Source: Vitrella brassicaformis CCMP3155 (Eukaryota > Protista > Chromerida). Taken from it: a DNA stretch of 64,000 nucleotides. Each line of letters opens with the position of its first letter. Position 1 is the first letter of the stretch. Shown here piece after piece: positions 33,557 through 61,173 of this stretch. Location of the stretch: contig CDMY01000331.1 of NCBI GenBank assembly GCA_001179505.1, positions 1 through 64,000 on the forward strand, in the 5' to 3' direction. Position numbers and translations under genes: made by a program. The notes below the pieces were generated by a model. The model did no database searches and had not been told where the DNA came from. It saw only the letters and a list, made by a program, of their open reading frames with translations.

Positions 33557-36500
33557 ATGAATGCAATTGACAATGCAGCTGCTGCGATGGCAGGGGCTTT
33601 CGTCGTCAAGTGCTCCATCTTCCCCGACGAGCGCACCGAGATCGTCTTCGGCGACGGATCCAGCCTGATCGTCCATCCGAACGCATCGCTGGCGAGTTAC
33701 TTCGACGCTGAGGGCGTCAGGCAGCGGCTGCGGACAGAGCACGTCACATCGCAGCTTCGCGAGAAGGTCAGGACCGCCTTTGAAGTGCGTAATCGGTATG
33801 CTTGGCGGCCCTGGTGGAGCAAAGAGGTGGTGGAGAGGGCTGGGGCAAAGGTCGACTTAGTACAGGTGAGGGAGGAGTGATGTATGCTGCTATGTGACGC
33901 CTTCCTGCAGTGCAGTGCAATGTCTGTGTCTGTCCTATCTGTCTTCTCAGGGGTGGCATCGCATTTGCAGTTTCGCGTGGCCCGATAGCCGAGAGGGGGT
34001 CTGCCTGGACACCCATGCCCCCCTTGTCCCGCCCTCCCATCCCCGCCCAGACGTGCTATCCGTCGCCTCTGTCGACGGCCATGCTCGTCTGGACTTGTAC
34101 CCCCACTCTCACCTCTTCTCAGTCAGCTACATGTACACCGTCCCGGCGCACCGGTCGGTGTCCATCGACGGCCGCACCAACGCCATATCCATCCGCTACG
34201 AGCACGTGTTCGCCACGCAGTACTTCTGCCTGAGGGGCACGTTCGCGGCCGAGTGGCTGCACCCGCTGCGTCTGGCGGTGCGGGGGCTTCTCAAGAGATT
34301 GCGGCTGCTGGATGCTTATCTCAAGGAGCGGGGAGTGGGGGACGAGGGGAGAGCTCATCTGAGAGGTGAGCCAGCCATGTCATGTGTGCAGTGCCCGGCT
34401 AAGGGCCACAAGGCGCGAATGGATCGCCCTTTCTATCCATCCCTTGGTGTGTGGTGTGATGGTTGGTGCGGTGCAGGTGAGGTGTCGTTCTTCGAGTCTT
34501 ATCTGGCCTACCTCGGGTCGCGTATCGAGGAAGCCCCTCTCGAGTGGATGCCTGACACCAACGACAGCGAGCGAGCCAGGNNNNNNNNNNNNNNNNNNNN
34601 NNNNNNNNNNNNNNNNNNNNNNNNNNNNNNNNNNNNNNNNNNNNNNNNNNNNNNNNNNNNNNNNNNNNNNNNNNNNNNNNNNNNNNNNNNNNNNNNNNNN
34701 NNNNNNNNNNNNNNNNNNNNNNNNNNNNNNNNNNNNNNNNNNNNNNNNNNNNNNNNNNNNNNNNNNNNNNNNNNNNNNNNNNNNNNNNNNNNNNNNNNNN
34801 NNNNNNNNNNNNNNNNNNNNNNNNNNNNNNNNNNNNNNNNNNNNNNNNNNNNNNNNNNNNNNNNNNNNNNNNNNNNNNNNCGTAATCGGTATGCTTGGCG
34901 GCCCTGGTGGAGCAAAGAGGTGGTGGAGAGGGCTGGAGCAAAGGTCGACTTAGTACAGGTGAGGGAGGAGTGATGTATGCTGCTATGTGACGCCTTCCTG
35001 CAGTGCAGTGCAATGTCTGTGTCTGTCCTATCTGTCTTCTCAGGGGTGGCATCGCATTTGCAGTTTCGCGTGGCCCGATAGCCGAGAGGGGGTCTACCTG
35101 GACACCCATGCACCCCTTGTCCCGCCCTCCCATCCCCGCCCAGACGTGCTATCCGTCGCCTCTGTCGACGGCCATGCTCGTCTGGACTTGTACCCCCACT
35201 CTCACCTCTTCTCAGTCAGCTACATGTACACCGTCCCGGCGCACCGGTCGGTGTCCATCGACGGCCGCACCAACGCCATATCCATCCGCTACGAGCACGT
35301 GTTCGCCACGCAGTACTTCTGCCTGAGGGGCACGTTCGCGGCCGAGTGGCTGCACCCGCTGCGTCTGGCGGTGCGGGGGCTTCTCAAGAGATCGCGGCTG
35401 CTGGATGCTTATCTCAAGGAGCGGGGAGTGGGGGACGAGGGGAGAGCTCATCTGAGAGGTGAGCGAGCCATGTCATGTGTGTGCAGTGCCCGGCTAAGGG
35501 CCACAAGGCGCGAATGGATCGCCCTTTCTATCCATCCCTTGGTGTGTGGTGTGATGGTTGGTGCGGTGCAGGTGAGGTGTCGTTCTTCGAGTCTTATCTG
35601 GCCTACCTCGAGTCGCGTATCGAGGAAGCCCCTCTCGAGTGGATGCCTGACACCAACGACAGCGAGCGAGCCAGGGTCATCACCCAGCCGCCCACACCAC
35701 CGCTCCTCGAGGCACAAGAGGCACCCAACGCCAAGTCGGTGCCGCCACGCCAGCACACTGACTGGCATCACACTGTGACGAAATAGAGGGAGGCATCATG
35801 CGCTCGATAATGGGCTTATCCGCGTGTGCATTCAGGCGCTCTCCAAGGCTGACATCTCGCGGCTGGAGGGATGACGACGGTCCTTGCCGCTTGGTGCCTG
35901 GCGGCGTTTTGGGGTCTCGCGTCCTGGTGGTTCCCGAAGGGACGATATGGCTGCACGCGGACCTGAGGGAGGCCACAGTGTGCCTGGCGGGGCAGGAGGA
36001 AGACATGGTGTGGGTGTCCACCGGGAGCGGCCAGGCCTGGCGCGCCAGGGAGGGCTTCTCCCTCAGTAATGAAGGACACACGCGCATGGCATGGCCGTTC
36101 GTTCTTGAATGTCTGTCTGTGTGCGCGTTGGTAGGTCGGACGAGTGGCTTTCCGATGGTGCTGCAACGCACCTTCATGCCCTGGGACGAACGCAGGCAAT
36201 GACTGACTGACTGACACGATGGATGCGATGGATGCGGGAACACATGTAATACTCACTCGTTTGTGCCTGTTTGTGATGCTTCTTGGCCATCCATCCGTCG
36301 TGGCTGCATGGCATGGCATGCAGGGCTGCGTTGAGGCGTCTGTTTGAGGAGGCCTTCTGCACCATCGGGTGCCACCGGGAAGCAGCACAGCTAGCACGGA
36401 CAAACAACTCATGTGCCCTCCCGGTCTGCAGAGTGAGTGAGCCAATATTGATTCCACTTCCTTCACACATCGATGGATGGCCTCTGTGTCTTCTCTTCCT

Positions 36501-46420: not shown

Positions 46421-46875
46421 AGTGGCGGCAGTGATGCCCAAGCTGTGAGGATGGATTGGCTCGTTCGGCAGAGATCGGTGTTGCCAATCAATAGGGGCAC
46501 AGCTGGGGGTGGCAGACAGGCCAACAGCGACGCACGGCGATGGCAAAAAGGCGGCGGGAGTGCGATCGCCACACGAGCTGAGGAGAAAGAAAGGAAGAAA
46601 GGGGAGGACAAACGAAAGGGAAGACGTCGGTGACAATCAAGACGAATCTTGGAGATCTGAAGGTCACACAAACATTCCATCGCCCATTGTGTTCATGTCC
46701 GTCATCATCGTGCTCCTGTCTGTGTTTGTCTGTCGTGCTGTTCACAGGTTGAGCTGTTCTGTCAGCAGGCGCCTAAGTGCTAAAAGGTGGGCGAGGAAAC
46801 ACGCGCATGGATCAATGCTCGTGACCCGCAGCACAATGTGTCTGCAGCAAAGTGGTGTGCATCTTCCATCCCTGC

Positions 46876-46956
46876 GCGTCGCTGTCTGTCTGGCCACACA
46901 CTGCTGTGGCCCTATCGATTGCAAACACCGATCTCCGCTGACCGAGCTGTCTGACA
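46876..46956 (+). promoter_or_regulatory. Shared MORN-family upstream element (candidate core promoter)
   Basis: CG(T/C)(C/T)GCTGT...GCTGTG(G/C)CC(C/T)T...(G/C)ATCTC(T/C)(G/C)C(T/C)GA(A/C)CGA occurs just before starts at 46420 (-), 46957, 50069, 57065 and 60109. Confidence 0.55.
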
Positions 46957-47065
46957 ATGAGTGGCCACGACGCCGCCCTCTCTGACGACGCCCAATCGCT
47001 ATCAAGCGCCTCCACTGTGGCCATGCCGACATTTGAGACGACCATCCCGTCTTGAGCATCAACCC

Positions 47066-48477
47066 ATGAGCACCGTCGGCGCATTCGTAAGGCAAGCAGT
47101 CCTGCCCCAGTCACAGCGTGGCATCCTCCCTCTCTCTGTGTGTGTAGGTGCGGGTCCGTGGTTTGCCGAACAACGCGTCGGAGCAGGACATCGTGTCCTT
47201 CATGCTGCCACTGCGGTGCCACACCGATGAAGTCACCATCATACGAGACCGTCACGTAAGCAGCCACGCCACATGACATCGTATTCCTTCCGTCGAGATT
47301 GCTGTGTGTCGCTTGTGTGTTCTCGCTGGCGTCTTCAGGGCTATGCTACGGGTGATGCATTTGTTCGTTTCAACTCCGATGCAGAGGTGAGGTCAAGAAC
47401 AGCCGCTGGCAGCGTGCTCACACGTTCGTTTGTGTGTCTTTTTGTCTGTCCCCTGATCACACGCAGGCGCACCAGGCCTTGACGACGAACGGCCAGCGTC
47501 TCGGCGCTTATTGTATCGAGGTTCTTCCCTGCTCGTGCACCGAGTATGACACCTACGTCAGCCGAGTGATGAATCGCGAAAAGAAGAAGGCTCTCCGCTA
47601 TACAGTGTACCACTCGCTGAAGGCGCTCAAGGACAGGAACACACGAGAGATCGCGCACCTCGCTCAGCGGTCCGCCATCGAACAGTAGCACTGGGAGCAG
47701 ATGAGAATGCTCGAACGGGAGGCGGATTTATCTCTTCGGCGTATGGAGAACCTGACGGGCAATATCGACGAGCTGCAGCGGCTGCAGACTACTCTGACGA
47801 ATGAGCTGCAGCAGCTGGAGGGCATCACCGACGCCCTCGTGTGGGATGTCTCTATGCAGCATGAGCGCAACCGGCGGCTCCGCGAGGCTATTCAGGCTCT
47901 CGAGACCGACACCGCCATGCTGGAGGAGCGACATCGGCAGCTTGAGAGGCGCCACGAGAGCATCACCCGCCAAGAGCAAGCAGAGCAAGACATCAAGCGT
48001 GCGCTATTTCAGCGCATCCAAGAGCTGGCGAGATCGAAGCTGAATGCACTCAAGCGCAATGAGAGGCTGCAGAGGCGCATCGATGCATTGCGCGATCCAG
48101 GAAGCGGCGCGGCAATCCTCTTCCATCAGACTGACCCACAAAGCCCCCAGCGACTGAGGGGTGGTGTCGATATGAGGGCGTGCAAGCCGATGGGGTTCTG
48201 GGGCTTAAACAATCGTCGTGGGTTCTTTTGTGCATCAACGGAGGAGATCACGAACGACCCCGGCAAGGCTCAGCATCGTGGGTGGATGTTCAAGTTGGCG
48301 GTGCGACTTGGACGCGTGAAGGAGCTGCACACCTTGAGAGGACCCGGGACGCTGGCGAGCAACGACGAGTTCGACAGTGTGGTGATTCAGACGGACTCGG
48401 GGCTGGAGTTTGCTGTGACGAAATCAGAGCAGGTGACGATTATTAGCGACTACCCCTACCCTCAGGGAATCAGATAG
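47066..48477 (+). pseudogene. qRRM-coiled-coil-ADP-ribosyltransferase, copy A, with premature TAG
   Basis: Exon 1 MSTVGAF, then VRVRGLPNNASEQDIVSF...GYATGDAFVRF...GAYCIEV. TAG at 47686-47688 where copy B has CAG. Downstream FHQT...GFFCA...FDSV...GLEFAV ART domain is intact in ORF 47701-48477. Confidence 0.8.
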
Positions 48478-48769
48478 AAAGTTGTTGTGAGTCTGCCTGT
48501 TCGGCTCTGTGCTTATCTGTGTTGGCGATCCACGTTTTTGTCTACCTGCCTGTGCATGTCATAGAGCTGTTGTTTATCCAACGAAATGACCCGTGGGCCC
48601 ATTTGGAGTGCCTGTGTGGATGGCTAGCTCGTGTGCGACTTTGCAATGTCTGCGTGGACGGTCAGTCTGTCTTGCGACTTTGCCACTGATTTATGAATGC
48701 TTTGTCCACGCATGACCTCCCAAACACTACCATCAAATCGCACACAACGCGCCTTCCAGTTGCCCCCAG

Positions 48770-49731
48770 TCACGGACTCTGGAATGGCACACCAATGACT
48801 TGCACTTGATCATTGCGATACACCACATATTCCAGACCATGGCGGTCGGTCACAACCACGGAATCAAAACCTCGCTGCTTCACCAGCGCCTCACTCAGCT
48901 GAGAGTCACTATGGTTGAGCACTCGTCCCAGCCGCAATCCAACCCTCACAACCCAGTCCGTCCGCCCTGACTGATGGCCGACCTTATGCTTGGTCATCTC
49001 CGGCGAGCATGCGCAATAGAAGCCCGTGCCCGCATAGTTTCGGTGCCTGGCGAAGCGATCGATGTCCACTCCGTAACGCTCAAGGTTGATAGCGCCCTCT
49101 CGAGTAGTGCGATGATAGGCAATGACACCGTATGGGCATTGCAGGCACCAGTGACTGGAATGGCCGTGTGGATTATTGCGGCAGAAGTGACTGTGCTGGC
49201 CGTTCGCATAGCGGCGGAGCTGTCGTTCCAGACGCCTCACGGCCCCCTCTTCGTCTGCCGCTTGGCCGCTCAACACATTGGCCTCTCTCTGCCGGGCCGC
49301 ATTAGCAACAACGAGCTGCTGGATCTGCTGGCTGAGAGCATCGCTGCAGCGGGAGAGAGCTGCGTTGGCCTCCTCATGCCGCCGCCGTGTGACCTCTCGG
49401 TCTTCGTGGATAGCAGTCAGGCGTCGGCCCTCAGCGACCGCAATAGAATGCTCCTCACGCAACTCCCTTGTGCCGCGTTCTGCTCGCAAGTCTGGCCGCT
49501 CAGGTGCTCATTCTGCAGTGTCAGCATGGCCCTCACTGCAGTGAGGGCGTTCTCACGATGCAGTGCGTCATCAAGGCGGTCCTGGGCCGGCTGTCGCTCG
49601 GCCGCGTGTCGGGCGACCTGCTGTCTTGCCTCATCTGCATGGCGCTGGAGCTGGGCAGTCTTGACGTCAGCCTCCCACTGCCTCACTTTGGCCCTGGTTC
49701 GCTCCCTGAAGGCTCTCACGCGAAGATCCAT
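48770..49731 (-). pseudogene. Coiled-coil-Cys/His-ADP-ribosyltransferase, copy A, with 1-nt frameshift
   Basis: Split into ORFs 49417-49731 and 48770-49489 by a 1-nt deletion near 49465 (ctcccttg versus ctcctcttg in copy B). ART motifs AYHRT, GFYCA, GFDSV and GLEYVVY. Confidence 0.8.
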
Positions 49732-50068
49732 CCGTCAAAACGCGTGTAAGCTGACAAACACACAGGGCATTGCGCTGTCAGACTGTCTGTACATGTTCTC
49801 CTTACTGGCAACGAATTACACCGCCGTCGCAATAAAGGACAACAGTAGCATGAGAAATCTGGCCAGATCTTCGTTGCCCATCACTCAGCACGTCACTTCA
49901 CTGGAAGAGCTTCCTACTGCGAGCTCAGCGTGCAGGAGCGCCTTGAGGCCATGCCTTTCTATTCCCGCGCGTTGCTGTGTGCCCGGCAGTCACCCTCAGC
50001 TGTGCCCCTTCCCGTAGCAAGCGCAGACCGACCTTCCCGTAGCAAGCGCAGATCTCTGCTGAACGACG

Positions 50069-51049
50069 ATGAATGGCCACCACGACGCCCTCTCTGACGA
50101 CTCCCAATCGCTGTCAAGCGCCTTCACCGTGGCCCATGCCGACGTCATGCAGCAGCTGCAGAACCTGCAGAGGTCCCAAGAGGCACTCGCCGCACAGCAG
50201 AAGAGACAAATGCAGCAGATGGAGGCACGACACCAAGCCGATAGGGAGGAGCGGCGGGCTGAGAGGGACGAGTGGCGCCGTGAACGGGCTGCTCTCGAGG
50301 GCCGCATCCGGCAGCTGGAAGAGAACAGCATATCGGTGGGGGACATGAACTTTGAGGGTGGCGTCTATCGTGGGCTGCTGATGAATGGGCAGCCCCACGG
50401 CAGCGGCACTCTGCTCACACCTGATGGCCGCGTCATCTACACAGGTGACTGGCGGCACGGCAAACGGCACGGCTATGGTGAGGAGTTCATCAACGGCAAG
50501 GTGACCTACAGGGGCGTGTGGGTGAGAGGGGAGAAGAAGGGAGCTATCGTGGCGACGGGCATGCGGTGGGAGGGCCATTTCTATCATGGTCCCACACTCG
50601 ATGGCAGACCACACGGCGGGGGGGAGCTGCGGGACCGCCACGACAAGATCATCTTCAAGGGTCAGTGGACTAACGGCCGTGGCCACGGCGACGAGTTCGA
50701 CTCACAGGGCCAGGTGATTTACAAGGGCGAGTGGGCGGACGGCAAGCGGCACGGCCAGGGGAAGGCATACTATTACTATGATGGTCCTGTGTTGTGGTTT
50801 GATGGCGAATGGCGAGAGGGCCTGGCCCACAGCGGCACCCTCTTCCCTGACGGCAACTGGCATGGACAGAAGAAGTTTGACGGCAGCCCTAAGTATCCCC
50901 TCACCGCGTCCATCACGCCCATTCGATGGCAGGCCGGACAGAGGATTCCCAACACCGACGTGCCTGGATGGGGATCTGGCAAATTACATGAGTGTCTGCG
51001 GTATGAGGGACTGTTGGTGTATCTGCCTCATGGCGCATTAGGGTGGTGA
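50069..51049 (+). CDS. Coiled-coil + MORN-repeat protein (cassette A), single exon, 326 aa
   Basis: MNGHHDALSDDSQSLSSAFTVAHADVMQQLQ leader, coiled coil, MORN repeats (IYTGDWRHGKRHGYG, IYKGEWADGKRHGQG) and cap domain. Confidence 0.88.
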   Translation: MNGHHDALSDDSQSLSSAFTVAHADVMQQLQNLQRSQEALAAQQKRQMQQMEARHQADREERRAERDEWRRERAALEGRIRQLEENSISVGDMNFEGGVYRGLLMNGQPHGSGTLLTPDGRVIYTGDWRHGKRHGYGEEFINGKVTYRGVWVRGEKKGAIVATGMRWEGHFYHGPTLDGRPHGGGELRDRHDKIIFKGQWTNGRGHGDEFDSQGQVIYKGEWADGKRHGQGKAYYYYDGPVLWFDGEWREGLAHSGTLFPDGNWHGQKKFDGSPKYPLTASITPIRWQAGQRIPNTDVPGWGSGKLHECLRYEGLLVYLPHGALGW

Positions 51050-55900: not shown

Positions 55901-56799
55901 GTGTGTGTATTCCTTACCGGTGGCTGCAGCTGCGGCAGCTGTGCGGGAATGGTCGATGCTGGCTGCGTGCATCCGACTGGCGAATGGCTGTCGGCGACGA
56001 GTGGATATGACGGCGTTGGTGCTGTGAATGGCAGTGGCTGTGGGCCAGTGGGGCCACTTGATTGATGGACCGGACAGGACACACAGAAAGCAAGAATGGA
56101 CAGCCATGTGCACACCGTCATGTGGATGGCTTACGGTGTGTTGTGTTGTGCCATGCAGTATGGCGCTATCAGCTTCTCCATCACACGCTGCCGACAACCT
56201 TAAGAAGTGAGCGACAAACAAACACAATGAAGGCAGACACATCGATTATGGTACACACATTGCCATTGACAGAGAGTCTCCTCCTTACGTGTTAATTTGT
56301 AATAGTGTTGTGTGATGAAGTCATCAGCGGCCCTCCCATGTGTGCCGCACACACGACACACTGTCCGCCTCTCGCCACTGATCACGCACACACACACAGG
56401 CGAATTGACTTGCCTTCAGTGACCCCATTCGGCCGTCCACCTGATGTCGTCGAAGTGGAGCCTCCTGTCGCCGATGAACAGATTCCCTGGCCCTCTCACG
56501 ACCTCCTCGATGACATCGGTGTGCGGGAAGGCCCACACCGTCTCACACAGGCCGTCCACCAGCACACAGTCACTGCCCTGGGCGATGGGCGGCGTGAGGG
56601 CTTTCCTACTCGACCGAAAGAGCGGCGCACAGTCGTCTTGTCGGTTGAGGTAGGCCTGGCCGCTGATGTGCAGGGGAAGGGCGGGGAGGGAGGCGGTGAC
56701 CTGCAGATCTTCATCGTTGTCGGGCAGATCTCCATAAGCAGCATCACCGACACGCCGCTTCTTCCTTCTGTGTGTCGTCTCCTCCATCTCATGGGACAT
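52914..56799 (-). CDS. Hypothetical lineage-specific multi-exon protein with an internally duplicated exon pair
   Basis: Start MSHEMEETTHRRKKRR at 56799, several spliced exons, and a 342-aa last exon ORF ending at 52914. No family recognised. The exon chain is not fully resolved, so partial decay is possible. Confidence 0.5.
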
Positions 56800-57064
56800 T
56801 TCGGCTGCGACTCTCCGCAAGCTTAGCTCGCAGACGAAAGGAGAAGAATGAAGAGGAGGACACACACCAGGTACGCCGGGAGATGTGCACAACAAAATGA
56901 ATAGATCCGGCACGATTACATGCATCATGTGCCGGCTGTGTGTCTGTGTCTGCAGCACCGCCCGCCGCATTTCTCTGTCCCAGAGCGTCGCTGTCTGCCT
57001 GCCGGCCACACACTGCTGTGCCCTTATTGACTGCAGCCATCTCTGCTGACCGAGCCGCCTGACG

Positions 57065-57145
57065 ATGAGTGGCCACGACGACGCCCTCTCTGATGACGCC
57101 CAATCGCTATCAAGCGCCTTCACGGTGGCCCATGCCGACATTTGA
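57065..57145 (+). promoter_or_regulatory. uORF (26 aa, truncated MORN leader) upstream of qRRM-ART B
   Basis: MSGHDDALSDDAQSLSSAFTVAHADI* ends 29 nt before the main ATG. Counterpart in A is 46957-47055 (32 aa). Confidence 0.6.
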
Positions 57146-57174
57146 GACGACCATCCCGTCTTGAGCGTCAGCCC

Positions 57175-58576
57175 ATGAGCACCGTTGACGCATTCGTAAG
57201 GCAAGCAGTCCTGCCCCAGTGACAGCGTGGCATCCTCCCTCTCTGTGTGTGTGTAGGTGCGGCTGCGTGGTTTGCCGAACAACGCGTCGGAGCAGGACAT
57301 CGTGTCCTTCATGCTGCCACTGCGGTGCCACACCGATGAAGTCACCATCATACGAGACCGTCACGTAAGCAGCCACGCCCACATGACATCGTATTCCTTC
57401 CATCGAGATTGCTGTGTGTCGCTTGTGTGTTCTCACTGGCGTCTTCAGGGCTATGCTACGGGTGAGGCATTTGTTCGTTTCAACTCCGGTGCAGAGGTGA
57501 GGTCAAGAACAGCCGCTGGCAGCGTGCTCACACGTTCGTTTGTGTGTCTTGTTTTCTGTCCCCAGGCCTTGGGGAGGAACGGCCAGCGTCTCGGCGCTTA
57601 TTGTATCGAGGTTCTTCCTTGCTGGTGCAGCGACTATGATGCCTACGTCAGCCGAGTGAACAATCGCGAAAAGAAGAAGGCCCTCCGCTACACAGTGTAC
57701 CACTCGCTGAAGGCGCTCAAGGACAGGAACACACGAGAGATCGCGCACCTCGCCCAGCGGTCCGCCATCGAACAGCAGCACTGGGAGCAGATGAGAATGC
57801 TCGAACGGGAGGTGGATTTATCTCTCCGCCGTGTGCGGGACCTGACGGGCAATATCGACGAGCTGCAGCGGCTGCAGACTACTCTGACGAATGAGCTGCA
57901 GCAGCTGGAGGGCATCACCGACGCCTTCGTGTGGAAGGTCTCTATGCAGCATGAGCGCAACCGGCGGCTCCGCGAGGCTATTCAGGCTCTCGAGAACGAC
58001 ACCGCCATGCTGGAGGAGCGACACCGACAGCTCGAGAGGCGCCATGCGAGCATCACACGTCGAGAGCAAGCAGAGCAAGACCTCAAGCGTGCGCTATTTC
58101 AGCGCATCCAAGAGCTGGCAAGATTGAAGCTGGATGCACTCAAGCGCAAGGAGAGGCTGCAGAGGCGCATCGATGCATTGCCCGATCCAGGAAGCGGCGC
58201 GGCAATCCTCTTCCATCAGACTGACCCACAAAGCGCCCAGCGACTGAGGGTTGGTGTCGACATGAGGGCATGCAAGCCGATTTCGGATTTCTGGAGTGCA
58301 AGCCAGATTAATCGTCCTGGATTCTTCTGTGCATCAACGGAGGAGATCACGAACGACCCCAGCAAGGCTCAGCATCGTGGGTGGATGTTCAAGTTGGCAG
58401 TGCGACTTGGCCGTGTGAGGGAGCTGCAGACACTCAGAGGATACGGCACGCTGGCGAGCAACGACGAGTTCGACAGTGTGGTGATTCAGACGGACTCGGG
58501 GCTGGAGTTTGCTGTGACGAAATCAGAGCAGGTGACGATTATTAACGACTACCCCTACCCTCAGGGAATCAGATAG
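57175..58576 (+). CDS. qRRM-coiled-coil-ADP-ribosyltransferase (PARP/Gig2-like fold, H-F-E), copy B, intact, about 395 aa
   Basis: Exons 57175-57195, 57257-57364, 57449-57496 and 57566-58576. hnRNP F/H-type quasi-RRM (VRLRGLP...TGEAFVRF...YCIEV), long heptad region, then ILFHQT / PGFFCA / KA..RGWMFKLAVRLGRV / FDSV / GLEFAV..EQV. Confidence 0.85.
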
Positions 58577-58800
58577 AAAGTGGTTGCGAGTCTGTGTGTC
58601 CGACTTTATGTGTTGGTGGTCCACGTTTTTGTCTACCTGCCTGTGCATGTCATAGAGCTGCTGTTTATCCAACGAAATGGCCCGTGTGGATAAACACACG
58701 GTGTGTGTGTGGATGGCTACTTCGTGTGCGACTTTGCCATTGGTTTATGAATGCTTTTGTCCACGCATTTCCTCCCAAACACTACCATTAAATCCCTCAG

Positions 58801-59769
58801 TCACGGACTCTGGAATGGCGCACCAATGATCCGTACTTGATCATTGCGATACACCACATATTCCAGACCGTGGCGGTCGGTCACAATTACGGAATCGAAA
58901 CCTCGCTGCTTCACCAGCGCCTCACTCAGCTGAGAGTCACTATGGTTGAGCTCAAGCACTCGTCCAAGCCGCAATCCAACCTTCACAACCCAGTCCGTCC
59001 GCCCTGACTGATGGCCGACCTTATGCTTGGTCATCTCCGGCGAGCACGCGCAATAGAGGCCCTTGCCCGCATAGTTTCGGTGCCTGGCGTAGCGATCGAT
59101 GTCCACTCCGTGACGCTCAAGGCTGATAGCGCCCTCTCGAGTAGTGCGATGATAGGCAATGACACCGTATGGGCATTGCAGGCACCAGTGACTGGAATGG
59201 CCGTGTGGATTATTGCGGCAGAAGTGACTGTGCTGGCCGTTCGCATAGCGGCGGAGCTGTCGTTCCAGACGCCTCACGACCCCCTCTTCGTCTGCCGCTT
59301 GGCCGCTCAACACATTGGCCTCTCTCTGCCGGGCCGCATTAGCAACAACGAGCTGCTGGATCTGCTGGCTGAGAGCATCGCTGCAGCGGGAGAGAGCTGC
59401 GTTGACCTCCTCATGCCGCCGCCGTGTGACCTCTCGGTCTTCGTGCATAGCAGTCAGGCGTCGGCCCTCAGCGACCGCAATAGAATGCTCCTCACGCAGC
59501 TCCTCTTGTGCCGCGTTCTGCTCGCAAGTCTGGCCGCTCAGGTGCTCATTCTGCAGTGTCAGCATGGCCCTCACTGCAGTGAGGGCGTTCTCACGATGCA
59601 GTGCGTCATCAAGGCGGTCCTGGGCCGGCTGTCGCTCGGCGGCGTGTCGGGCGGCCTGCTGTCTGTCCTCGTCTGCATGGCGCTGGAGCTGCGCAGTGTT
59701 GGTTCGCTCCCTAAAGGCTCTCGCTTTGGCCCTGGTTCGCTCCCTGAAGGCTCTCACGCGAAGATCCAT
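58801..59769 (-). CDS. Coiled-coil-Cys/His cluster-ADP-ribosyltransferase (PARP/Gig2-like fold, H-Y-E), copy B, intact, 322 aa
   Basis: Single ORF: heptad region, HSHFCRNNPHGHSSHWCLQC, then IAYHRT / GKGLYCA / TKHK / VGLRLGRV / GFDSV / GLEYVVYRNDQV. Confidence 0.87.
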   Translation of the reverse strand: MDLRVRAFRERTRAKARAFRERTNTAQLQRHADEDRQQAARHAAERQPAQDRLDDALHRENALTAVRAMLTLQNEHLSGQTCEQNAAQEELREEHSIAVAEGRRLTAMHEDREVTRRRHEEVNAALSRCSDALSQQIQQLVVANAARQREANVLSGQAADEEGVVRRLERQLRRYANGQHSHFCRNNPHGHSSHWCLQCPYGVIAYHRTTREGAISLERHGVDIDRYARHRNYAGKGLYCACSPEMTKHKVGHQSGRTDWVVKVGLRLGRVLELNHSDSQLSEALVKQRGFDSVIVTDRHGLEYVVYRNDQVRIIGAPFQSP

Positions 59770-59853
59770 CCGTCAAAACGCGTGTAAGCTGACAAACACA
59801 CAGGGCATTGCGCTGTCAGACTGTCTGTACATGTTCTCCTTACTGGCAACGAA

Positions 59854-59919
59854 TTACACCGCCGTCGCAACAAAGGGCAACAGTAGCATGAGAAATCTGG
59901 CCAGATCTTCGTTGCCCAT
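59854..59919 (-). promoter_or_regulatory. Candidate uORF (21 aa) upstream of coiled-coil-ART B
   Basis: MGNEDLARFLMLLLPFVATAV*, followed by a GTAAGG donor and a tgtttgtcag acceptor before the main ATG. Conserved in A at 49816-49881. Confidence 0.4.
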
Positions 59920-60108
59920 CACTCAGCACGTCACTTCACTGGAAGAGCTTCCTACTGCGAGCTCAGCATGCAGGAGCGCCTTGAGGCCATGCCTTTCTAT
60001 TCCCGCGCGTTGCTGTGTGCCCGGCAGTCACCCTCAGCTGTGCCCCTTCCCGTAGCAAGCGCAGATCTCTCCTGAACGAGCTGCCCTTTCGCGTGCTTAC
60101 TGCTGACA

Positions 60109-61173
60109 ATGAATGGCCACCACGACGCCCTCTCTGACGACGCCCAATCGCTGTCAAGCGCCTACACTGTGGCTGCTGCCGACGTCATGCAGCAGCTGCA
60201 GAGCCTCCAGAGGTCACAAGAGGCACTCGCCGCCCAGCACACGAGACAAATGGAGCAGACAGAGGCAAGACACCAGGCTGCTATAGAGAAGCTGGAGAGC
60301 CGCATCCGGGGACTGGAGGCACTCGCAGGCATCGCTGTTGGCAGCATGTCCTTTGAGGGTGGCGTCTATGACGGACAGCTGATGGGTAGGAAGCCCCACG
60401 GCAGCGGCATTCTGCGCGCACAGCATGGCCGTGTCATCTACACCGGTGACTGGCGGCACGGCAAGCGGCACGGCCGCGGGAAATCGACAAACGGCCGTAT
60501 GGTGTATGAGGGTCAATGGGCGGATGGCGAGATGAAAGGCAAGGGCCACATTACCAACCTGACGCTCAAGGACGCCCAAGGACAGCATTTGGGCCTCTTC
60601 ACTGGACCCACACTCGACGCCAAGCCGCACGGCGAGGGGGATATGCGAGACGACCTCGATCAGGTCATCTACAAGGGCGAGTGGATTGATGGAGTGAAGA
60701 AAGGAGCTGGTGAAGCGACGGGCATGCCATGGGAGGAGGGCTGCAAATATTACGGGGGAACCTTCCATGGGCAGCCAGACGGCGAGGGCGAGCTGAGAGA
60801 CGGCGACGACCAACCCATCTACAAGGGCGAATGGAAGAACGGCAAGCGACACGGCCAGGGGAAGGCATACTACCGCGACCGCCGTACTCAAGGATGGAGG
60901 AGGAAAAGGTGGCGGCCTGTGTTGTGGTTCGATGGCGAATGGAGGAAGGGGAAGGTGTACCGAGGCATCCTCTTTCCTAACGGCGGCTGGGTAGACCCTT
61001 CCGAGGAAACGGTATGGCCCGACCCCAGACACTGCTCACTTCCCATATCATGGCAGGCGGGGCAGGAGATACCTCATGCCTATCTGCCGGGGATAGGATA
61101 CCTGTCCCAGTGGCTGGCGAATCAAGATGTATCAGTGTATCTGCCTGATAGACTAAGGCCACTGGCATACTAG
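60109..61173 (+). CDS. Coiled-coil + MORN-repeat protein (cassette B), single exon, 354 aa
   Basis: Same leader MNGHHDALSDDAQSLSSAYTVAAADVMQQLQ, MORN repeats and a diverged cap domain (VLWFDGEWRKGKVYRGILFPNG...WQAGQEIP). Confidence 0.88.
   Translation: MNGHHDALSDDAQSLSSAYTVAAADVMQQLQSLQRSQEALAAQHTRQMEQTEARHQAAIEKLESRIRGLEALAGIAVGSMSFEGGVYDGQLMGRKPHGSGILRAQHGRVIYTGDWRHGKRHGRGKSTNGRMVYEGQWADGEMKGKGHITNLTLKDAQGQHLGLFTGPTLDAKPHGEGDMRDDLDQVIYKGEWIDGVKKGAGEATGMPWEEGCKYYGGTFHGQPDGEGELRDGDDQPIYKGEWKNGKRHGQGKAYYRDRRTQGWRRKRWRPVLWFDGEWRKGKVYRGILFPNGGWVDPSEETVWPDPRHCSLPISWQAGQEIPHAYLPGIGYLSQWLANQDVSVYLPDRLRPLAY

Follow-up and report, generated by a model that had tools for sequence, protein, structure and literature searches.

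Two described systems are among those closest to the gene reported here. In the animal mono-ADP-ribosyltransferases PARP10 and PARP14, RNA-recognition motifs (RRMs) and a PARP catalytic domain are combined in one polypeptide (PMC8946771). The RRMs of these proteins are canonical and accompanied by macro, WWE or UIM modules, no long coiled coil is present, and the catalytic domain, of about 200 amino acids, passes the Pfam model PF00644. Their catalytic triad is H-Y-I/L. The second system comprises the quasi-RRMs (qRRMs) of hnRNP H/F and related proteins, as exemplified by hnRNP F qRRM2, in which F120 of the β1-α1 loop and Y180 of the β-hairpin are jointly essential, the substitution F120A/Y180A abolishing G-tract binding (PMC1540728). 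Here, the first 64,000 nucleotides of contig CDMY01000331.1 (C331) of the alveolate alga Vitrella brassicaformis CCMP3155 (hereafter the window) were analyzed. A gene at positions 57175-58576 of the window encodes a single qRRM, a coiled coil of 173 residues and a small PARP-like ADP-ribosyltransferase (ART) domain. As in PARP10 and PARP14, an RRM-type domain lies N-terminal to a PARP-fold domain, whose structural Z scores were 7.6 to PARP10 and 7.2 to PARP15. Unlike in those proteins, the single qRRM was copied locally, the coiled coil is long, and the ART, of about 120 amino acids, has a putative H-F-E triad and no match to PF00644. The local qRRM, and an ART whose relatives are Vitrella proteins and minimal ARTs of protists, place the protein outside the PARP10/PARP14 family.

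The gene is transcribed, and it is spliced as annotated. Its four coding exons lie on the + strand (Table 1), and translation of the locally joined exons is identical, letter for letter, to the public protein P0001 (395 aa), named 'unnamed protein product' at NCBI and 'RRM domain-containing protein' in UniRef. P0001 was used as the query in protein searches, and exons joined in local scripts served for translation and for ratios of non-synonymous to synonymous substitution (dN/dS). Contigs from four public runs (X1, X2, X3 and X5) were mapped onto positions 56400-60400. The joints 57195->57257, 57364->57449 and 57496->57566, all of them GT..AG and equal to the annotated introns, were found in contigs of X1, X2 and X5, which come from two studies; run X3 showed the introns and none of the joints, and was therefore taken to be DNA-like. 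One contig (474 nt in X1, 447 nt in X5) joins the exon of the 5' untranslated region (5'UTR), exons 1-3 and about 50 nt of exon 4, and further RNA contigs are collinear with the genome across 57692-58660, covering the coiled coil, the ART and the 3'UTR. The preliminary description of this DNA had placed a single qRRM, a long coiled coil and a Gig2/PARP-like ART in one gene; its coordinates were exact, the gene product is P0001, and the two C-terminal parts correspond to a helix predicted by AlphaFold2 (AF2) and to matches of the PARP fold, as described below.

When residues 1-85 of P0001 were compared with PDB sequences by phmmer, the first match was hnRNP H qRRM1-2 (6dhs, E 1.3e-14), followed by Glorund (2e-11) and hnRNP F qRRM2 (1e-10), and then by RBM19, GRSF1, RBM12, hnRNP F qRRM1/3 and ESRP1. 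The best 16 matches were all quasi-RRM proteins, with E values of 1.3e-14 to 8e-4, and the first canonical RRM appeared at 1.3e-3. The sequence reads VRLRGLP at the place of RNP2 and TGEAFVRF at that of RNP1, and the aromatic consensus of RNP2 and RNP1 is absent. Pfam RRM_1 scored 17.9 bits against a cut-off of 20.7, which is expected since the domain is a quasi-RRM. Alignment to solved qRRMs extends through β4; the core residues RGLP, GEAFV and IEV are kept, and Arg11, Arg67 and Phe51 correspond to R116, R175 and the structural F156 of hnRNP F. These comparisons agree with the earlier assignment to the hnRNP H/F type rather than to canonical RRMs, and the N-terminus is clearly, as judged by alignment, an hnRNP H/F-type quasi-RRM by descent. 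Residues 1-76 thus have their best relatives in hnRNP H/F, GRSF1, Glorund and ESRP (E 1e-14 to 1e-6), with which they share RGLP and GEAFV, whereas the Vitrella protein, unlike these, has only one qRRM, lacks a Gly/Tyr-rich region and is fused to a putative enzyme.

The origin of the qRRM could be traced within the same genome. Among 5.8 billion proteins, the nearest to residues 1-85 was Vitrella P0010, with 56% amino acid identity to its qRRM1 and 99% query coverage. P0010 contains two qRRMs and Gly/Tyr-rich regions and is therefore considered the alga's own hnRNP H/F-like protein; its gene is on contig C545 (region 33968-34072, locus L017). In both genes the first three coding exons measure 21, 108 and 48 nt, and the three introns have identical positions, all in phase 0. 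Exons 1-3 share 75% nucleotide identity (dN 0.20, dS 0.75), the qRRM part of exon 4 shares 57% (dN 0.45, dS saturated), and alignment is lost in the introns (45-57%). Homology to P0010 stops at '...DYDAYV' (parent '...EYDRYV'); from '...RVNNREKKKALRYTVYH' on, P0001 matches the N-terminus of an RRM-less paralogue, P0003 ('MDQRARNHWRKKALRYTVYH'), and the junction in P0001 reads 'DYDAYVSRVNNREKK'. The matching exons and introns, together with the switch in homology, indicate that part of the hnRNP H/F-like gene was duplicated long ago at the DNA level and, within exon 4, became joined to the beginning of a coiled-coil-ART gene. This derivation of the qRRM, by copying at the DNA level from the 5' end of a native Vitrella gene, is newly recognised here. 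The precomputed Pfam accession PF28441.1 is common to P0010 and P0001.

The 5' region comes from yet another source. Positions 56967-57139, in the 5'UTR exon, duplicate, in diverged form, the beginning of the neighbouring MORN gene (59991-60183), with 72% identity in local alignment and about 90% in the first 25 codons, and an upstream open reading frame (uORF) of 26 codons at 57066-57146, read from the sequence, is built from the first codons of the MORN gene. By these comparisons, the gene is a lineage-specific chimera from three sources, namely a MORN 5' region, exons 1-3 plus part of exon 4 of the hnRNP H/F-like gene, and a member of the coiled-coil-ART family. An origin independent of PARP10/PARP14, as first suggested from the architecture alone, is thereby upheld, the qRRM exons being copied from the P0010 gene and the ART belonging to a family that expanded in Vitrella and includes P0003, which is devoid of an RRM. 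None of the relatives found by any search here combined an RRM with an ART of this kind. We hold architecture and origin as described, taken jointly, with high confidence.

Residues 91-263 were predicted by AF2 to form a single helix of 173 residues, with pLDDT up to 98. In the best register, hydrophobic residues were enriched at positions a and d (0.447 versus 0.252 ± 0.034 in 300 shuffles, z 5.8), and Pfam gave weak coiled-coil matches in this middle region. For the ART, an AF2 model built on the paralogue alignment reached pLDDT 82 and pTM 0.79. Foldseek comparison of this model with the PDB gave 175 matches at E ≤ 1e-3 (best E 6e-5, TMq ~0.5), of which the best 50 were all PARP catalytic domains, including those of tankyrase 1/2, PARP4, PARP15 and PARP10. 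Structure comparison with 48,161 chains by VIA-align gave TNKS2 at Z 8.7 (106 aa, 2.6 Å), PARP13 at 8.5, PARP1 at 8.2, diphtheria toxin at 8.0 and PARP2/3/10/4/15 at 7.2-7.8, and most of the further rows among the 50 listed were ART-fold proteins. Feature and structure searches of the ESM Atlas led to PARP clusters (Atlas model TM 0.6-0.7); the top feature cluster, a chordate 'PARP catalytic domain' of 157 aa with score 0.90, is no more than a lead towards the fish Gig2 proteins, which are PARP-like and interferon-induced. The best structural matches, tankyrase, PARP1 and PARP13, align over 106-108 residues with a root-mean-square deviation of 2.6-3.8; unlike them, the Vitrella ART has about half the size, shows 14-17% identity, and lacks a helical regulatory domain and SAM/ankyrin modules.

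Direct sequence searches with the ART gave only MDC1, at chance level, among PDB sequences (phmmer), and an exhaustive phmmer search of 1.84 billion representatives returned the Vitrella paralogues, the spurious P0005 and nothing else. P0005 (840 aa, 13-fold tandem repeat, E 3e-13 to the ART) was rejected as a relative, since the match looks like a compositional or repeat artefact. Viral contigs were scanned and nothing was found; the Pfam scan of P0001 revealed no other domains, modules of the PARP10/14 type included; and a literature search for Vitrella and ADP-ribosylation returned nothing relevant. A search with a profile of the family alignment reached non-Vitrella proteins at E 1e-19 to 1e-3, including metagenomic proteins and those of Streblomastix strix and Symbiodinium natans, which show the classical motifs 'YHQTS...GGGIYFA...GYDSV...EYVVY'. 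Several of these relatives come near the PF00644 threshold, at 16-26.6 bits versus 26.7 (P0016 26.6, P0018 21.1), and it is only through them, transitively, that P0001 is linked to PF00644. The same small ART is thus present in protist and metagenome proteins such as P0016, P0018 (S. strix) and P0033 (S. natans), with E 1e-15 to 1e-3; proteins of this type keep the triad Tyr and have other N-termini (ankyrin, ubiquitin, membrane segments or none) and no RRM.

Across 12 paralogous domains of Vitrella the residues H, T, D, G, D and E are invariant, and the paralogue consensus reads 'IAYHQT...GxGFYCAS...T..K...GWMVKL.LRLGRV.EL...GFDSVI...GLEFVVY'. A profile of these 12 domains, run against the PDB with hmmsearch, gave PARP3, PARP13 and PARP4 at non-significant E values (0.12-0.9) and served for the motif register only: in these weak alignments the family H, GxGxY and DSV align to PARP3, and the H and E to the Y and V triad positions of PARP13. 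The putative triad of P0001 is His276-Phe313-Glu373, with His and Glu invariant in the family. A Thr eight residues past the aromatic position, which in PARP1 is Ser904, is also conserved in the family. Since paralogue motifs, structure matches and profile search agree, the modelled fold, the motifs and the transitive profile links identify the ART as a divergent, minimal PARP-like member of the H-Y-E clade, of about 120 amino acids. Catalytic competence of the domain is plausible, with about even odds. The loop before the GFF(Y) motif (58262-58325), at the position of the PARP donor loop, reads CKPISDFWSASQINRPGFF versus CKPMG-FWGLN--NRRGFF between the two tandem copies of the gene (see below), and differs by indels and several substitutions between copies that are otherwise about 93% identical.

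At least 13 paralogous ART domains, mostly located behind a coiled coil, are present in the Vitrella genome. P0003, P0004, P0006-P0009 and the convergent neighbour of the gene share the same ART, whereas the qRRM exons are limited, within the family, to two tandem copies on C331; the closest A-type member, P0003, which is devoid of the RRM, shows 52% identity to P0001 over coiled coil and ART. Two types can be distinguished: A-type members consist of coiled coil and ART, and B-type members of coiled coil, a Cys/His knuckle and an ART with H-Y-E. Three independent loci carry conserved convergent pairs of an A-type and a B-type gene: C331, where tandem duplication has produced two such pairs, C531 and C469. 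The A member ('+') of each pair has a residue other than Tyr in the triad, namely Phe at both C331 pairs and C531 and Ser at C469, and the B member ('-') is H-Y-E. The unpaired A-type protein P0004 keeps Tyr.

A predicted complex of P0001 residues 85-395 with the 322-aa convergent neighbour scored 0.51, against 0.00 for the best of three controls ('weak support'). Of 78 solved complexes, 51 attained the mark used in this test, as did 2 of 108 mismatched pairs; scores of 0.60 or below included only 5 of the 78 solved complexes, but all 4 passing mismatches. The runs agreed in at least 75% of contacts, with partner pLDDT of at least 76. In B-type proteins (58801-59769; P0007, P0008, P0009 and P0011) the Cys/His-rich knuckle stands directly before ART strand β1, for example HFCRNNPHGHSSHWCLQCPYG-IAYHRTT, and A-type proteins have none; this knuckle may be a zinc-binding element.

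The second pair on C331 is part of an upstream tandem cassette (window 46850-51049) with the same order of a qRRM-coiled-coil-ART gene, a convergent ART gene and a MORN gene. Its B copy (48770-49731, - strand) carries a 1-nt deletion at codon ~89, about 265 nt past the ATG, plus a 6-nt in-frame deletion. The 1-nt deletion (place 59504) was also found in contigs of X1, X3 and X5, from which it follows that it is real and that the copy is transcribed. The two A copies have introns about 97% identical and a dN/dS of 0.50 overall, 0.47 in the coiled coil and 0.43 in the ART, the last two values being taken as a sign of constraint.

How might such a protein work? The reading that we favour, with somewhat better than even confidence, is that of an oligomeric mono-ART chimera tethered to RNA or to ribonucleoproteins (RNPs). 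The 173-residue coiled coil would form a dimer or oligomer; the ART (H276-F313-E373), lacking PARP regulatory and helical domains, would bind NAD+ and mono-ADP-ribosylate; and the captured qRRM would act as a targeting module directing it to RNA, to an RNP or to a protein that partners hnRNP H/F, by means other than the classical G-tract cage. The protein may, in addition, form a heteromer with the convergent H-Y-E paralogue. Of these parts, targeting to RNA or RNPs through the qRRM is proposed tentatively, at appreciably less than even confidence.

A number of observations weigh against this reading. In the listed contigs, RRM exons and ART never occurred together, leaving a gap at ~57620-57691. 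The contigs break near 57692, where the paralogue 10 kb upstream is nearly identical; as no contig spans the whole, the presence of RRM and ART on the same transcript is strongly, not finally, answered. The uORF has a better start context than the main ATG and ends 29 nt before it. PF00644 was absent at E ≤ 1 for P0001 and the convergent neighbour in Pfam scans of the intron-containing open reading frame (ORF), the last exon, the ART piece and P0001. The triad Tyr, present in most paralogues, is Phe313. The sister A copy has an in-frame TAG (47686-47688), and dN/dS between the tandem copies reaches 0.86 in the qRRM, on few sites. The pass in the complex test is weak and a lead only, since two coiled-coil paralogues may pair generically.

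The qRRM itself supplies the remaining points. Unlike in hnRNP H/F, the HMMER alignment places Asn15 and Cys72 at the G-tract cage positions, that is, at F120 (loop-1 aromatic, F120/W20) and Y180 (hairpin Tyr, Y180/Y82), and hnRNP F K150, H178, R179 and F184 are replaced by Tyr45, Ala70, Tyr71 and Leu76. The parent P0010 retains the cage aromatics in its qRRMs (Tyr/Tyr and Trp/Tyr). Three codons are missing at the start of helix α2 (A-D-Q in the parent, A-H-Q in the sister copy), because a deletion of 20 nt relative to the 47-kb sister copy (57497-57565 versus 47387-47475) removed the ancestral intron-3 acceptor plus 7 exon bases and shifted the acceptor to the leftover 'AG', which is used in the RNA contigs. 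In the AF2 model of P0001, β1-α1-β2-β3 (residues 6-54) have pLDDT 83-90, and residues 57-93 fall below 50; the input alignment had no homologue rows there, the hnRNP rows being trimmed at residue 59, and the low values are thus no evidence of disorder. With both essential aromatic residues gone, classical G-tract caging by this qRRM is unlikely, as judged from the alignment.

The strongest competing explanation, to which we assign a minor but substantial share of probability, is that segmental duplication within a birth-and-death family produced, by accident, an expressed chimeric gene that serves no function and is now drifting and decaying. Several of the features just listed speak for it: the sister cassette 10 kb upstream has both ART genes broken (A by the TAG, B by the 1-nt deletion), the qRRM has lost its G-tract residues and three codons, the triad Tyr has become Phe, a uORF sits in the 5'UTR, and dN/dS amounts to 0.5 for the whole and to 0.86 for the RRM, the second half of which diverged much faster from the parent than the first (dN 0.45 versus 0.20). 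However, the ORF of 395 codons is intact although dS to the parent is ~0.75 or saturated, which argues that it has been open for long. Moreover, the qRRM retains its core (RGLP, GEAFV and IEV) and the ART every invariant residue but Tyr, expression and splicing are seen in three runs belonging to two studies, and dN/dS in the coiled coil and ART is below 0.5 although one of the compared copies is a pseudogene.

Somewhat less probable, and holding only a small chance in our assessment, is that the qRRM reads no RNA and is instead a module binding protein or poly(ADP-ribose) (PAR), or a bait mimicking hnRNP H/F, with the H-F-E domain acting as the regulatory or sensor half and the H-Y-E paralogue as the catalytic one. 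Such a division of labour would fit the composition of the convergent pairs, each with a non-Tyr '+' member and an H-Y-E '-' member, and the Tyr kept by unpaired P0004; it would also fit the predicted complex (0.51 versus 0.00 for the best control) and a qRRM that has lost cage residues while keeping those that determine the fold. RRMs are, besides, among the listed PAR-binding modules (PMC8946771). Nevertheless, stacking on nicotinamide could also be achieved by a Phe, and H-F-E is therefore not necessarily inactive; the interaction is a prediction, in which a pass between coiled coils counts as weak; and the qRRM, present only in the C331 copies, is no general feature of the pairs. A bolder version, which we regard as improbable, is that the A/B pairs form a chromerid-specific two-component ADP-ribosylation system, in which the qRRM would serve as a bait or sensor (e.g. 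for a factor of viruses or selfish elements directed against hnRNP H/F or its RNAs) and would switch on the H-Y-E partner via the coiled coil. If true, eukaryotes would have a home-grown counterpart of decoy-bearing immune receptors.

Equally improbable is the proposal of the preliminary description that a G-tract-binding qRRM activates the ART or aims it at RNA: homology to G-tract-binding qRRMs is clear, R11, R67 (hnRNP F R116 and R175) and the GEAFV loop are kept, and Tyr71, beside the lost Tyr position, and Tyr45, in the β2-β3 loop, might substitute, but N15 and C72 are non-aromatic while the parent keeps its aromatics, F120 and Y180 are jointly essential in hnRNP F (PMC1540728), and helix α2 is three residues shorter.

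The features of the locus are collected in Table 1. Direct repeats composed of the MORN upstream region and its first ~25 codons flank the ART gene pair (56967-57139 and 59991-60183), and were also found at 46864-47030 and 49957-50143. Contigs of X2, X3 and X5 match from 60178 on and carry other sequence before it (loose end TCGCCTCTGTTGAAGACGGG...). This break coincides exactly with the end of the shared MORN first-codon repeat, and there is probably a further MORN paralogue whose 5' end differs. The convergent B-type gene has a 55-nt 5'UTR intron (59789-59843, - strand) that is spliced in X1 and X2 and retained in one X5 contig, and an in-frame stop lies 6 nt upstream of the start of its coding sequence (CDS) at 59769.

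Table 1. Features of the qRRM-coiled-coil-ART gene and its convergent neighbour (window positions)
Feature	Position	Strand	Details
5'UTR intron, GT..AG	56868..56952	+	a single X1 contig carries joint 56867->56953, with 22 nt on its short side; weak, single-run; transcript start upstream of 56867
5'UTR exon	56953..57174	+	X1 and X5 RNA contigs covering 56953/56958-57195
CDS, four coding exons	57175-57195, 57257-57364, 57449-57496, 57566-58576	+	ATG 57175, stop 58574-58576
Coding exon 1, MSTVDAF	57175..57195	+	homologous to MPSNGAF, exon 1 of the hnRNP H/F-like gene
Coding exon 2, qRRM β1-α1-β2	57257..57364	+	108 nt; size and phase as in parent; Asn15 = 57278-57280, loop-1 aromatic position
Coding exon 3, qRRM β3 (GYATGEAFVRFNSGAE)	57449..57496	+	48 nt, same in parent
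Exon 4 start, qRRM α2-β4 and C-terminal segment, aa 60-90	57566..57658	+	from alignments; Cys72 = 57602-57604, β-hairpin Tyr position
Predicted coiled coil, aa 91-263	57659..58177	+	AF2 helix, heptad periodicity, weak Pfam coiled-coil matches
Minimal PARP-like ART, aa 271-389	58199..58555	+	His276 58214-58216, Phe313 58325-58327, Glu373 58505-58507
Stop codon	58574..58576	+	3'UTR in RNA contigs reaches at least 58660
Convergent B-type paralogue, 322 aa, intact H-Y-E, possible partner	58801..59769	-	coiled coil, Cys/His knuckle, ART

The gene offers a clean and datable case of a new multidomain enzyme made through exon capture: its donor gene, recipient family, junction and borrowed 5' region are all identifiable, and it is expressed. 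By the comparisons presented here, a combination of RNA-binding domain and ART like that of animal PARP10 and PARP14 evolved again, from different parts, in an alveolate alga. The analysis also exposes, in Vitrella, an unannotated and expanded family of minimal PARP-like ARTs, often arranged in convergent H-Y-E / H-F(S)-E pairs. Should the ART prove active and the altered qRRM have gained a new ligand, P0001 would serve as a compact natural model of how targeting domains redirect ADP-ribosylation.

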